Of a stretch of 64,000 bases of DNA, positions 5,396 to 8,239 are shown in pieces. The notes beneath the pieces were generated by a model. The model worked only from the letters and a program-made list of their open reading frames with translations. It searched no databases and was not told the origin of the DNA. Every line of letters starts with the position of its first letter. Position 1 is the first letter of the stretch. Location: sequence record NC_019526.1; one strand, given 5' to 3'. Both the position numbers and the translations under genes were made by a program.

Positions 5396-5709
5396 AATTT
5401 AAATTAAAATATGTTGTACTACTGTTGGTATTATCTTTAATTGGATGTAATAGTACCGCTCCAGTTGAGATGAAACAACAAGTACAACAGGAAGTACTAT
5501 TGGAACGCTGTTCAGAAGACACTCCATTACCAACACAAAAAACTGTTGACAAAGACGGAAATGTTGGATATGATGGTAAAGAAGTCTTTAGAGTATTACG
5601 TGAATGGGATGCAATTTATTTTGATTGTGCAAGCCGTTTAGATGCACTCATTACGTATCTACAAAAAACCCAAGATCCTAATTTTAAGGTAACTATAAAG
5701 GATAAGTAA
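5392..5709 (+). CDS. o-spanin lipoprotein (Rz1-like)
   Basis: signal peptide with lipobox LIGC, Pro-containing mature part with extra Cys, 4-bp overlap with i-spanin. Confidence 0.75.
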   Translation: MKFKLKYVVLLLVLSLIGCNSTAPVEMKQQVQQEVLLERCSEDTPLPTQKTVDKDGNVGYDGKEVFRVLREWDAIYFDCASRLDALITYLQKTQDPNFKVTIKDK

Positions 5710-6293
5710 TGAATAAGTACAAAGTACTAAAAGTATTACCTTTATCATTTTTAAATTCTTTAGATCATACTGATATCAAACTAAAAATAGGACATTTTGG
5801 TGGTTCAAAATTTTCATACTATCCACAAAAAGTTAAAACATTTTCAAAGAATCACAAATGTGTAGCATGTGGAATTGAAGCCACTGAAGTACGTATTGAA
5901 TATATGCACGGATGTTCTCATGTAATCTATGGCAAACCACACATCAATGTATATGCGGTGCTTGGTAATTATTCAGTACTAATGACAGTTGATCACGATA
6001 TACTTGCATCCGAAGGCGGAAATGATTTAGACAATAATTTTAGTACCATGTGTTCCAAATGTAATAACAAAAGAGGATCAAAGTATAAGACACTCAAATC
6101 ATTCCTCAAATCAATTGAGGGGCGAGATCTCTTAACGGAATACATGTCTGTACCTAAAAAGACAAAAACCAGTCAGAACGCGGCTGAGCAGCGTTTACAC
6201 GATGAATTTTGGGAATTAGGACATAACTGGCATTACAGAGAATATCTTCGTTATCTGAAGGCCAAAAATAAAGCTAAAAAGAAAGGGGCATAA
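5709..6293 (+). CDS. HNH endonuclease
   Basis: CxxC (CVAC), then TVDH...GG...N...CSKCNNKRG. Confidence 0.8.
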   Translation: MNKYKVLKVLPLSFLNSLDHTDIKLKIGHFGGSKFSYYPQKVKTFSKNHKCVACGIEATEVRIEYMHGCSHVIYGKPHINVYAVLGNYSVLMTVDHDILASEGGNDLDNNFSTMCSKCNNKRGSKYKTLKSFLKSIEGRDLLTEYMSVPKKTKTSQNAAEQRLHDEFWELGHNWHYREYLRYLKAKNKAKKKGA

Positions 6294-6366: not shown

Positions 6367-6762
6367 ATGCTCAAAGAGTTTGATTACAGTACTTTAGAAG
6401 TTATTTCAGCAGTTAAAAATATCAACAATTTAGATGATGAAAAAACAGTACTGATCACGATCACATTTGTAAACAAAGAAGATTCATATAAACATTTATC
6501 TGGCATAGAAGAAATGTTGCATAAACATCATTTAGAAGAAAATCGGAAATATATTAAACTACAATGTAGTTATACCCAAAATTTGAACAATTTTTTAATT
6601 ATAAATAAAACAATTAAGATTAGTTTCAATGATCCTAAACAAAAATACCGTGCTAAATCGTTCAACGAAGATCAGGTTAGTAATGAATTACTAATGGATA
6701 TTGAATTTATCAATGATTTCTTCGATTCATGTGATAATGAATTAAAAAAGGTATACGTGTAA
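6367..6762 (+). CDS. hypothetical protein
   Basis: 131-aa ORF downstream of promoter. Confidence 0.75.
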   Translation: MLKEFDYSTLEVISAVKNINNLDDEKTVLITITFVNKEDSYKHLSGIEEMLHKHHLEENRKYIKLQCSYTQNLNNFLIINKTIKISFNDPKQKYRAKSFNEDQVSNELLMDIEFINDFFDSCDNELKKVYV

Positions 6763-6770
6763 AAATATTT

Positions 6771-6800
6771 TTGAACAATTTTAGTACTATGTAATATAAT
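6771..6800 (+). promoter_or_regulatory. sigma70-type promoter
   Basis: TTGAAC-18-TATAAT at the start of a 1-kb region with no plus-strand ORF. Confidence 0.6.
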
Positions 6801-6806
6801 GTAAAT

Positions 6807-7300
6807 AATATCAATTCGAGGACTGAATTCTGCTGAATATCTATATGTATATGGATATACAAATAAACTTGAACCTATCGAAAACGTAGAGAGGCATTTG
6901 AGTGGTTCAGCAGCACGCCTTGCAGGTAGTACCGGTGATAAAATCCTAAGTGTGAGCTTACAAAGCACAGCCATAATTCCAAAGAGTGCACAGGAGTCAT
7001 CGCAACACGGCAAGTAAAAGAGAGCTATAGACATATGCTTTCCATCACTATAATCCTCTGGTGATGATAGATTGAACCTACGGAAAGTATTTTCCATAAT
7101 TGTTAAGGGAGAATACACCAAAATTTTTACAGGAGAGTTGCGTCTAAATTTTGTTGTATTCAAGTACTGAGATTGGTCAAATAGTCTCAGTATTAAGTGT
7201 GTGGTATGATACCTACTAAACCACATGACCTCTGCATAAGACTGAGATAGGGAGAAACCGGGCAGACCGCTTCCGTTCTTTATAAAAAAAGAAATTCTCA
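6807..7300 (+). ncRNA. candidate large structured non-coding RNA, family unassigned
   Basis: GC-enriched, no plus-strand ORF, near-contiguous stems with G-U pairs (6837-6858, 6870-6909, 7020-7042, 7043-7066, 7082-7095, 7111-7161, 7163-7194, 7199-7226); ends approximate. Confidence 0.55.
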
Positions 7301-7324
7301 ATTTGACAGTTTCGAAGACTACCA

Positions 7325-7443
7325 TCTTCAAGAAATAAAAAAAAACGTTTTTAAGAACGCGTTCCGTTGCGTTATTTTTTTCTTCCCTCCCTGTGGGGGG
7401 GATATAAAGTTTCTCTTCCAAACCTCTTCAAGAAATAAAAAAA
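7325..7443. repeat. direct repeat TCTTCAAGAAATAAAAAAA x2, 100 bp apart
   Basis: copies start at 7325 and 7425. Confidence 0.85.
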
Positions 7444-7464
7444 GAAAAACAACAATTACCGATT

Positions 7465-7553
7465 AAAATCAAACAACACAGAACGAAACGAAGTGAAGTG
7501 AATGAGTTGTTTGATTTTATGAGAGATGTGTTGAACGAAGTGAAATACATCTT
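7465..7553. repeat. two hairpins with ACGAAGTGA loops
   Basis: 13-bp perfect inverted repeat 7465-7477/7506-7518 and 10-bp stem 7523-7532/7544-7553. Confidence 0.8.
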
Positions 7554-7789
7554 GACATGGATAAACAATAAGTACTTAATTAATAAAAACAAATAAATCA
7601 AGTACTGAAATAAATTACAAAGGAATTATATCCAATGAATACTTAAAAAAAGAACCAGATATAATTAAGTACCGATTGGTTCTCTTTTTAAATAACCGAC
7701 TATAAATTAGTCAAATCAAATAAATTCATTTAATAAAAAGAAATAAATATTTCTATAAATCCCAACCAAAGGGCTTATAGGAGAAATTA

Positions 7790-8239
7790 ATGCAAGAACC
7801 ACAAGACATAAATCAGTTACGCAATTTAATGGATTTCATAGTACAATCAGAAGAAGACGAGTCCTATGATCAATTACTGCTTACATTTATTGAAAATAGT
7901 TTATTCCTTGAATCAGCAGCACACAACTGGCATTTACAAAGCAAACACTACACAAAGCACTTGCAATTAGATGAGTTATACAAAGAACTACCGGAGTTCA
8001 TTGATGCATTTATTGAAGGAATTATGGAATCAAGAGGGCCATTAATAATTGGTACTGGAAATAGCTACCAATTCACTGAAATAAGTACTTGTATTCCTAC
8101 TTTAGAAGAGTATCTAAATCAATGCGAAGCAATTCACCAGATGCTTGAATCTAATGAGGACTATGGAAGTACTAACACACTTGAAGACATAATGAGTTTT
8201 ATTGATGGTGTTCTTTATAAATTAAAACATTTACAATAA
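7790..8239 (+). CDS. ferritin-like/Dps-family protein
   Basis: HNWHLQ...KHLQLDELY...IDAFIE resembles Dps ferroxidase helices; AGGAG RBS; TAAATA at 7744. Confidence 0.7.
   Translation: MQEPQDINQLRNLMDFIVQSEEDESYDQLLLTFIENSLFLESAAHNWHLQSKHYTKHLQLDELYKELPEFIDAFIEGIMESRGPLIIGTGNSYQFTEISTCIPTLEEYLNQCEAIHQMLESNEDYGSTNTLEDIMSFIDGVLYKLKHLQ

Follow-up and report, generated by a model that had tools for sequence, protein, structure and literature searches.

Locus and Transcription Signals

The sequence analyzed here (the window) is a stretch of 64,000 nt that corresponds to bases 1–64000 of Klebsiella phage vB_KleM_RaK2 (NC_019526; RaK2 below), with bases 6700–7500 matching this genome at 100%. On its plus strand, from 6771 to about 7443, we predict a gene for a large non-coding RNA (ncRNA) of roughly 500–600 nt, which is present in multiple copies in jumbo phages and is also found in islands of Enterobacterales. 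The RaK2 annotation contains only one antisense open reading frame (ORF) at this locus, ORF014w (6672–7325, minus strand), and the plus-strand neighbors are ORF013 (6367–6762) and an rI.-1-like gene (7790–8239). Between 6771 and 7440, the element has a promoter and a structured core of ~500 nt, followed by a hairpin, then an intrinsic terminator and finally a C-rich hairpin, and it also includes a 36-nt direct repeat; about 350 nt containing further hairpins separate it from the next RaK2 gene. The main features of the locus are as follows.

6771 to about 7443, plus strand: the RNA element, with a conserved hairpin module continuing to about 7552
6771–6800, plus strand: sigma70-type promoter (–35 box TTGAAC at 6771–6776, 18-nt spacer, –10 box TATAAT at 6795–6800)
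6672–7325, minus strand: ORF014w (YP_007007169.1), annotated ORF of 217 amino acids (aa), or 249 aa from TTG, judged to be a non-gene

A preliminary description of this DNA had proposed a structured RNA of about 500 nt that ends at 7300 and is transcribed from its own sigma70 promoter, TTGAAC-18-TATAAT. This size is correct for the core, but the element reaches about 7443, and the hairpin module, about 7552. The promoter is indeed present, and both hexamers are kept at one position across an alignment of 51 non-redundant full-length homologues with less than 95% identity (alignment A2, used throughout), the consensus being TGAAAC ... TGnTATAAT/TATACT; from its location we infer a transcription start near ~6807 in the RaK2 element. 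The increase in G+C content claimed for the sequence after the promoter is also seen, from about 0.25 to 0.39–0.43 over 6800–7100, and, as had been stated, the plus strand carries no substantial ORF, none in 6771–7440 exceeding 39 aa. Promoter-like sites on the minus strand are found only at 6734–6814, overlapping the plus-strand promoter, and are not more frequent than in shuffled sequences (their conservation was not considered).

The plus strand of the segment 6805–7300 folds at –128.1 kcal/mol (z = –2.83, with one of 100 shuffles equally good), and z = –1.44 is obtained for the minus strand of the same segment. The plus-strand fold is hence better than that of shuffled sequences, as anticipated in the preliminary description. 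Taken alone, the folding energy provides modest support, while the comparative evidence is decisive.

Structured Core and Selection on RNA Structure

The core is a structure of ~500 nt with at least 12 covarying helices and a 7-bp pseudoknot. Pair statistics were derived from the RNAalifold consensus fold of A2 and from our own scripts for covariation and pseudoknot tests. RNAalifold predicts 66 pairs, 43 of them with compensatory change in at least one sequence and many with 15–32 such sequences; an independent scan for stacked columns that change in a compensatory way arrives at the same set of helices and, in addition, reveals the pseudoknot. In the latter, formed by 7176–7182 and 7301–7307, 356 of 357 cells are Watson–Crick pairs (99.7%), and each of the seven pairs is represented by two to three pair types. 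Sliding the 3′ partner by 1–3 columns yields 24–43% pairing, and none of 1000 column shuffles matches the observed value.

The preliminary description had noted that most imperfections of the RaK2 stems are G-U pairs on the plus strand, and the family as a whole behaves in the same way: nested helices of A2 contain 291 G-U cells versus 19 A-C cells. This excess indicates selection on the plus-strand RNA, and not on the minus strand or on hairpins in the DNA. The stretches separating the helices contain long strings with little or no variation among the 51 sequences, including AAGGGA, GACC, and AGAAA ... CCGCTT; unpaired strings of such length and constancy are commonly found at tertiary contacts or binding sites. 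Compensatory changes, strand-specific tolerance of G-U pairs, and a fold better than that of shuffles, that is, the generic signs of a structured ncRNA, are all observed. The following features, all on the plus strand, constitute the core.

6837–6858, plus strand: 5′ hairpin; every homologue has a hairpin here, with a self-complementary sequence that differs each time
6874–6879/6889–6894 (CCTATC/GAGAGG), plus strand: small hairpin 1 with conserved loop GAAAAnGTA, covarying
6902–6904/6914–6916 (GTG/CAC), plus strand: small hairpin 2 with conserved loop GTTCAnnCAG, covarying
6919–6923/7010–7014 and about 6932–6935/6999–7002, plus strand: long-range two-part helix enclosing a variable insert
7020–7067, plus strand: variable hairpin domain, with the closing helix 7020–7025/7063–7067 as the only part common to the family
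7081–7110, plus strand: hairpin 7081–7084/7091–7094 (A2 columns 445/457, 15 compensatory sequences), followed by AAGGGA at 7105–7110
7111–7126/7146–7161, plus strand: long hairpin whose loop holds a conserved module with consensus GTACAATATAGATCCGTCCAAAATT
7163–7194, plus strand: hairpin with the 5′ strand of the pseudoknot in its loop (GTCAAAT, 7176–7182); stem compensatory in 9–31 of 51 sequences
7198–7300, plus strand: 3′ core, starting with hairpin 7198–7205/7220–7227 and then junction GACCTCTGC at 7227–7235
7243–7247/7296–7300, plus strand: helix of the 3′ core (A2 columns 725–729/809–813, compensatory in up to 32 of 51 sequences)
7250–7254/7270–7274 (GGGAG/CTTCC), plus strand: hairpin of the 3′ core with a near-invariant internal loop (A2 columns 733/755, 21 compensatory sequences)
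7277–7279/7290–7292, plus strand: helix of the 3′ core (A2 columns 759–761/803–805, 11–15 compensatory sequences)
7301–7307 (ATTTGAC), plus strand: 3′ strand of the pseudoknot, pairing with 7176–7182 over 7 bp

Both sides of the two small hairpins have changed in 19 (A2 columns 195/209) and 20 (columns 222/235) of 51 sequences. The same holds for the long-range helix in 15–24 of 51 sequences (columns 239–241/369–371); its flanks are conserved strings similar to GAAACCCGTTAG and CACGGCAATGCGGC, and positions 6912–6934 are deleted in phage K64-1. Compensatory changes occur in the closing helix of the variable domain in 9–31 of 51 sequences (columns 377–382/424–429) and at 7111–7113/7159–7161 of the long hairpin in 10–22 sequences, and the AAGGGA string (7105–7110) is invariant in all 51.

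Of the stems listed in the preliminary description, those at 6837–6858, 7082–7095, 7111–7126/7146–7161, 7163–7194, and 7199–7226 are recovered in the family alignment. On the other hand, the stem TGAACC/GGTTCA (6870–6909) is RaK2-specific and clashes with the two covarying conserved-loop hairpins, and the two stems proposed in 7020–7066 fall in the variable domain, where the closing helix alone is shared. The second ACTGAGA (7241), suggested to be an alternative partner for TCTCAGT, has to be reassigned, as its TGAGA pairs with TCTCA at 7296–7300 in a covarying helix.

Two local rearrangements were seen in the alignment. The GTACAATATAGATCCGTCCAAAATT module, situated in the loop of the 7111–7161 hairpin in most members (7127–7150 in the window), is relocated after the GGAAG hairpin in eight phage copies, and the island copies carry an extra partial GTACAATATAGATCCGTCCAAAATT copy after the GGAAG hairpin (the two A2 sites are columns about 590–620 and about 770–800). 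In one paralogue group (L010, L013, L006, L008, and relatives; A2 columns 40–80), the first hairpin past the –10 box is followed by a T-run and for this reason resembles a terminator placed right after the promoter.

Antisense ORF014w

The minus-strand frame of ORF014w is open and annotated in RaK2, and the conservation of the locus could be ascribed to a protein encoded there. We assign a negligible probability to this explanation, which is refuted as far as sequence allows. In the sister phages Muenster, K64-1, and RCIP0023 (~96% DNA identity) the ORF014w frame contains 7–17 stops; moreover, the length of the span differs by 4 nt in Muenster and by 23 nt in K64-1, so that the frame is shifted. 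In these three genomes the locus is annotated otherwise or left blank, and related genomes call assorted small ORFs on either strand. Substitutions over codon positions 1, 2, and 3 number 4, 6, and 7, respectively, with no third-position bias. ORF014w has no match among PHROG families, the homologous gaps of Yersinia phage fHe-Yen9-03 and Escherichia phage EJP2 contain no long ORF on either strand, and the asymmetry between G-U and A-C cells favors a plus-strand RNA. Hence, the possibility raised in the preliminary description, that conservation might follow the antisense ORF, is not borne out, ORF014w being broken in the sister phages. A small ORF starting from a conserved ATG after the G-run was considered as well and rejected, as indels of 1–2 nt shift its frame among homologues. 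In the annotation, an ncRNA feature should take the place of ORF014w and of the small ORFs called at this position in related genomes.

Homologues in Jumbo Phages

A sensitive BLAST search with the RaK2 segment retrieved near-identical Alcyoneusvirus phages and short matches in fHe-Yen9-03 and EJP2, the latter lying inside unannotated gaps of 650–740 bp, of which the fHe-Yen9-03 gap is headed by an annotated promoter. The gaps of RaK2, fHe-Yen9-03, and EJP2 align end to end, with blocks of identity split by variable hairpins. When the fHe-Yen9-03 and EJP2 gaps were used as queries, 64 and 71 phage records were obtained, with matches at 3–5 separate places per genome. The carriers are RaK2-like jumbo phages, namely Asteriusvirus, Eneladusvirus, Mimasvirus, Alcyoneusvirus, and their relatives; the named hosts all belong to genera of Enterobacterales, except for two phages named for Xanthomonas.

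Scanning with the most conserved string of the 3′ core, AGAAAYMGRRCARMCCGCTT, as an exact pattern yielded 38 viral, 61 metagenomic, and 9 bacterial-genome loci, and a profile hidden Markov model (nhmmer) identifies nearly all of them as full-length homologues of 490–680 nt, with E-values from 1e-50 to 1e-148. In some cases, several loci come from a single phage genome, e.g., three from 121Q and four from one 366-kb metagenomic phage. The 64-kb window contains one copy. A second, diverged RaK2 copy is located at 279,653–280,183. The gap containing it is 740 bp long, lacks annotation, and lies upstream of ORF446, dam, and a cytidyltransferase gene, a gene neighborhood common to copies in EJP2, fHe-Yen9-03, and CBB; the number of copies in RaK2 is thus at least two, with 113.5–246.5 kb of this genome outside the scanned range.

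In the tree of RNA sequences, copies from different phages cluster by paralogue type, and the two RaK2 copies are sisters on long branches. This clustering, together with the synteny of one compared locus in four phages, fits old duplications better than active mobility. All phage copies have the same orientation as the flanking and downstream phage genes.

Copies in Bacterial Integrative Islands

Full-length chromosomal copies are found in Serratia fonticola, Serratia sp., Enterobacter chinensis, Silvania, Buttiauxella, and other Enterobacteriaceae. The usual order is a chromosomal gene, an integrase gene, the RNA in the same direction, a convergent gene of a cI-like S24 repressor, and a gene of a cro-like helix-turn-helix protein; the integrase is of the tyrosine type at some loci and of the large serine type at others. 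In the RNA tree all island copies fall into a single clade, which is nested within the set of paralogue clades of the jumbo phages.

The island of Enterobacter chinensis (JARDVI010000005.1, L121:5909–16183) spans ~10.5 kb between hofB/ppdD and nadC. It encodes a serine integrase, a cI/cro-like pair, a 286-aa uncharacterized protein, an LprI-domain protein, and a resolvase, as well as cargo including an ADP-ribosylglycohydrolase, a DarT-family protein, and a UvrD-like helicase; neither capsid or other structural genes nor recognizable replication genes or an initiator are present in its gene content. It looks like a mobile defense island or a satellite.

In Serratia fonticola CP183218 (L114:4775–5490), two tandem rof genes flank the island end beside the RNA; the island may thus have integrated in rof or close to it, duplicating the target gene in the process. 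In place of the cI/cro pair, it has two ParB/RepB-like genes.

The 3′ Module

Downstream of the core, the following features are present, again on the plus strand.

7308–7343, plus strand: repeat A, with hairpin GAAGA/TCTTC (7314–7318/7325–7329) and motif ACCATCTTCAAG
7356–7382, plus strand: intrinsic terminator, a hairpin and then a T-run
7383–7402, plus strand: C-rich/G-rich hairpin CCCTCCC TGT GGGGGGG, in all members of the family, with a single occurrence in the window
7408–7443, plus strand: repeat B, a direct repeat of A 100 nt downstream; the common part is AGTTTC ... CTTCAAGAAATAAAAAAA
7464–7519 and about 7523–7552, plus strand: two hairpins with ACGAAGTGA in their loops

In RaK2 the 36-nt repeats A and B flank the terminator and the C-rich hairpin. 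The hairpin of repeat A is kept through compensatory change, with GACGA/TCGTC in most homologues versus GAAGA/TCTTC in RaK2, and the pairs of the C-rich hairpin vary only between C-G and U-G, which fits a plus-strand RNA. The two repeats change together: at two variable positions they are identical within an element in 47 of 48 and 43 of 48 homologues, compared to 25 and 23 on average, and 35 and 34 at most, upon permutation. A rare variant, where present, is found in the two repeats simultaneously: CTTCAAG in both RaK2 copies and CGACAA in one Serratia island. As paralogues of one genome may differ in the repeat variant, the constraint operates inside each element and not via a genome-wide factor.

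The extended motif GAACGAAGTGA (at most one mismatch) occurs in the 64-kb window at the 7464–7552 hairpins only. With at most one mismatch, ACGAAGTGA is observed within 300 nt downstream of 25 of 49 homologues, island copies included, at a density of 2.1 per kb versus a background of 0.13 per kb, a 16-fold enrichment.

At the terminator position, a hairpin is inserted in 24 of 51 homologues, being followed by a T-run in 20 of them, and is lacking in the remaining 27. In these 27, transcription probably continues, as would be expected if the RNA were a cis-acting leader governing read-through into the downstream operon, e.g., a processive antiterminator similar to put or nut, or a large sensor. 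The promoter at the head of the element, the terminators right after it, and the orientation of every phage copy along the downstream genes are in line with such a role. In the islands, the RNA points at the cI-like gene and then at the cro-like operon, and read-through would cross the former in antisense and enter the cro-side operon in sense. Still, the genes that follow differ from one paralogue to another and from phages to islands, the antiterminator RNAs known so far are smaller by a factor of about ten, and in RaK2 the next gene is preceded by some 350 nt with more hairpins. The resemblance to HK022 put and lambda nut, which are likewise placed between an early promoter and terminators, close behind the former, and are oriented as the operon, is limited by the same difference in scale: those are 50–70 nt long, whereas the RaK2 element is about 500 nt long and pseudoknotted. 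Overall, we regard a leader function as distinctly unlikely.

The main competing explanation, which we consider unlikely but somewhat less so, is an RNA-primed replication origin like those of ColE1 (RNA II) or T4 (oriF/oriG); the preliminary description had named a replication-primer RNA feeding the adjacent hairpin cluster as its alternative. Transcription from the promoter would yield a folded pre-primer of ~550 nt, the 3′ part of which would form a persistent hybrid near the C/G-rich hairpin, and the repeats and downstream hairpins would act at the DNA level, e.g., in primosome or helicase loading. T4-type phages use several origins, and jumbo phages would similarly hold several, consistent with 3–5 dispersed copies per 350-kb genome, while the islands would carry one origin for their own replication, perhaps performed by an infecting jumbo phage. 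RaK2 encodes replication and recombination genes of the T4 type, including RNase H, the E. chinensis island has an integrase, a cI/cro-like switch, and defense cargo with no recognizable replication initiator, and the named hosts are Enterobacterales, with the exception of the two Xanthomonas-named phages. An origin also accounts better for conservation beyond the terminator, that is, for the C/G-rich hairpin, the direct repeats, and the conserved-loop hairpins; moreover, an RNA whose 3′ end is made from repeat A might base-pair with the template at repeat B, which would explain the identity of the repeats. The RaK2 element is similar to ColE1 RNA II and T4 oriF/oriG in having its own promoter, a folded RNA of ~550 nt, and G/C-rich and hairpin features after it, although a promoter of its own and a predicted transcript about as long as RNA II do not by themselves discriminate between the explanations.

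Other observations are difficult to reconcile with priming. The invariant loops and junctions and the covarying pseudoknot exceed what is established for primer RNAs such as ColE1 RNA II, and the conservation of the RNA is far stronger; no conserved antisense promoter was noticed, and, unlike in ColE1, there is no counterpart of RNA I (no hit of the Rfam RNAI family) and the context is not a plasmid. In RaK2 a strong terminator precedes the putative origin, with a T-run hairpin at this place in 20 of 51 homologues, and the C-to-U changes in the C-rich hairpin suit pairing in RNA rather than in DNA.

Two further features were seen near the element. The region 7624–7694, just upstream of the rI.-1-like gene at 7790, contains nested inverted repeats ending in a T-run (TGGTTCTCTTTTT) with a –10-like box, GATATAAT, in the loop, and may represent a terminator and the next promoter. 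About 500 bp upstream of the element lies ORF012 (5709–6293, plus strand), an HNH endonuclease gene; it is probably unrelated to the RNA, since other copies have no such association.

Relation to Known RNAs

No match at the gathering score was found in the whole window with Rfam 15, and in bases 6500–7900 scanned at E-values up to 10, only scattered weak hits were seen, all downstream of 7315 and far below the gathering score. In nine homologous loci no Rfam family recurs at the element. The families without a match include ROOL, GOLLD, OLE, HEARO, raiA, RNase P, tmRNA, 6S, group I and II introns, and RNAI, and ARAGORN detects neither tRNA nor tmRNA in the window. Both the failure to match tRNA, tmRNA, RNase P, or group I/II introns reported in the preliminary description and its main suggestion, an undescribed large structured phage RNA, thus agree with our results: there is no Rfam family, and covariation over 51 homologues is strong and includes a pseudoknot. 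Full-text literature searches retrieved no description of this RNA; the tables of one survey (PMC10690425) were not covered by them. This survey, from 2023, lists 10,006 predicted structured RNA candidates for the viruses of IMG/VR, and this set may hold fragments of the element.

Among large phage RNAs, ROOL (RF03087) and GOLLD (RF01998) are the natural comparison, being non-coding, highly structured, 500–800 nt long, phage- or prophage-borne, and with many covarying helices. Still, there is no match in sequence or structure, and their hosts are mainly Firmicutes and environmental samples, in contrast to Enterobacterales here; the RaK2-type family also differs from them in having more than one diverged copy per genome (several) and in its conserved module of 3′ repeats. 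ROOL and GOLLD reportedly form multimers. On the basis of these sequence comparisons, we consider the family to be new in both sequence and structure, while there are precedents for its general kind, since other large ornate RNAs of mobile elements have been described.

A group I intron was considered and rejected: the element begins at a promoter, is intergenic at all loci, has no exons, and gives no hit to RF00028, and the pseudoknot, in which the loop of a hairpin pairs with a strand farther downstream, differs from the P3/P7 arrangement. A likeness of GATAGAC and GACTATC to group I core elements is supported neither by Rfam nor by topology. A role of the GGA/AAGGGAG motifs in Csr-type binding or as a Shine–Dalgarno sponge was also rejected, as one motif is base-paired and no supporting pattern is seen.

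In more general terms, the element could be a ribozyme or the RNA of a mobile element, with repeats A and B serving as cleavage, joining, or template-jump sites that flank the C-rich segment. A compact pseudoknotted fold with invariant unpaired nucleotides would suit catalysis, and linked repeats are expected where two sites have to match one guide or each other. On the other hand, raising the E-value limit to 10 brings up no ribozyme or intron model of Rfam, the position of the element outside genes leaves it with no exons, no reverse transcriptase or homing enzyme is consistently adjacent at the loci whose neighbors were inspected, and the grouping and synteny of the copies fit old duplications better than active mobility. 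We consider a ribozyme or mobile-element RNA quite improbable.

Proposed Function

The explanation we prefer, with a probability of roughly 0.45, is that of a trans-acting scaffold or decoy RNA, expressed early and in abundance. The host RNA polymerase would transcribe the element early, from about 6807, and transcription would stop at the 7356–7382 terminator or partly read through the C-rich hairpin and repeat B. The RNA would accumulate in a stable, compactly folded form and act in trans as a scaffold or decoy for a putative conserved protein or nucleic-acid partner, the several gene copies supplying the RNA dose. As the RNA is carried by unrelated mobile elements of one host order, the partner is likelier to be a host one, or one shared by phages and islands, than a phage-specific protein.

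The closest experimental parallel comes from RNA sequencing of phage PA5oct, where four ORF-free transcripts were reported, one of them, ncRNA002, being 451 nt long and constituting about 5% of phage reads (PMC7318152). It resembles the RaK2 element as an ORF-free jumbo-phage transcript of ~450 nt from the same wider clade, highly expressed throughout infection (PMC7318152); the two were compared by sequence only, and nhmmer shows no similarity of ncRNA002 to the RaK2 family.

Several observations weigh against a trans-acting scaffold or decoy. The RNA of the 27 homologues lacking the inserted terminator hairpin may run into downstream genes as a leader, and the orientation of the copies along the flanking phage genes fits a cis role too. 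The scaffold or decoy model does not account for repeats A and B changing together by identity, and conservation past the terminator (the C-rich hairpin, repeat B, and the ACGAAGTGA hairpins) is superfluous for a plain terminator-ended RNA gene. Finally, PA5oct ncRNA002 had to be rejected as a homologue, no similarity being detected by eye or by nhmmer with the family profile.

The island copies allow for one more interpretation, to which we give a low probability, comparable to that of a cis-acting leader: the element might be a handle common to RaK2-like jumbo phages and host defense islands, the islands being jumbo-phage-directed satellites or decoy defenses. They could be replicated, induced, or packaged on jumbo-phage infection, or interfere with it by mimicry, and the RNA with its linked 3′ repeats would then work in a way that has no described precedent, e.g., through a primer or template that jumps from one of these repeats to the other.

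To our knowledge, few large, intricately folded bacterial and phage RNAs have been found so far. Each such class, from RNase P, tmRNA, and group I and II introns to, lately, OLE, ROOL, and GOLLD, has opened new biology. The RaK2-type family has members in cultivable phages of E. coli, Klebsiella, Salmonella, Serratia, Yersinia, and Erwinia and is thus open to experiment. Its occurrence both in lytic jumbo phages and in islands with DarT-like defense genes hints at a role in conflicts between phages and hosts or between phages and satellites, and, if the element proved to be a replication origin, it would provide the first handle on the start of replication in 350-kb T4-like jumbo genomes.

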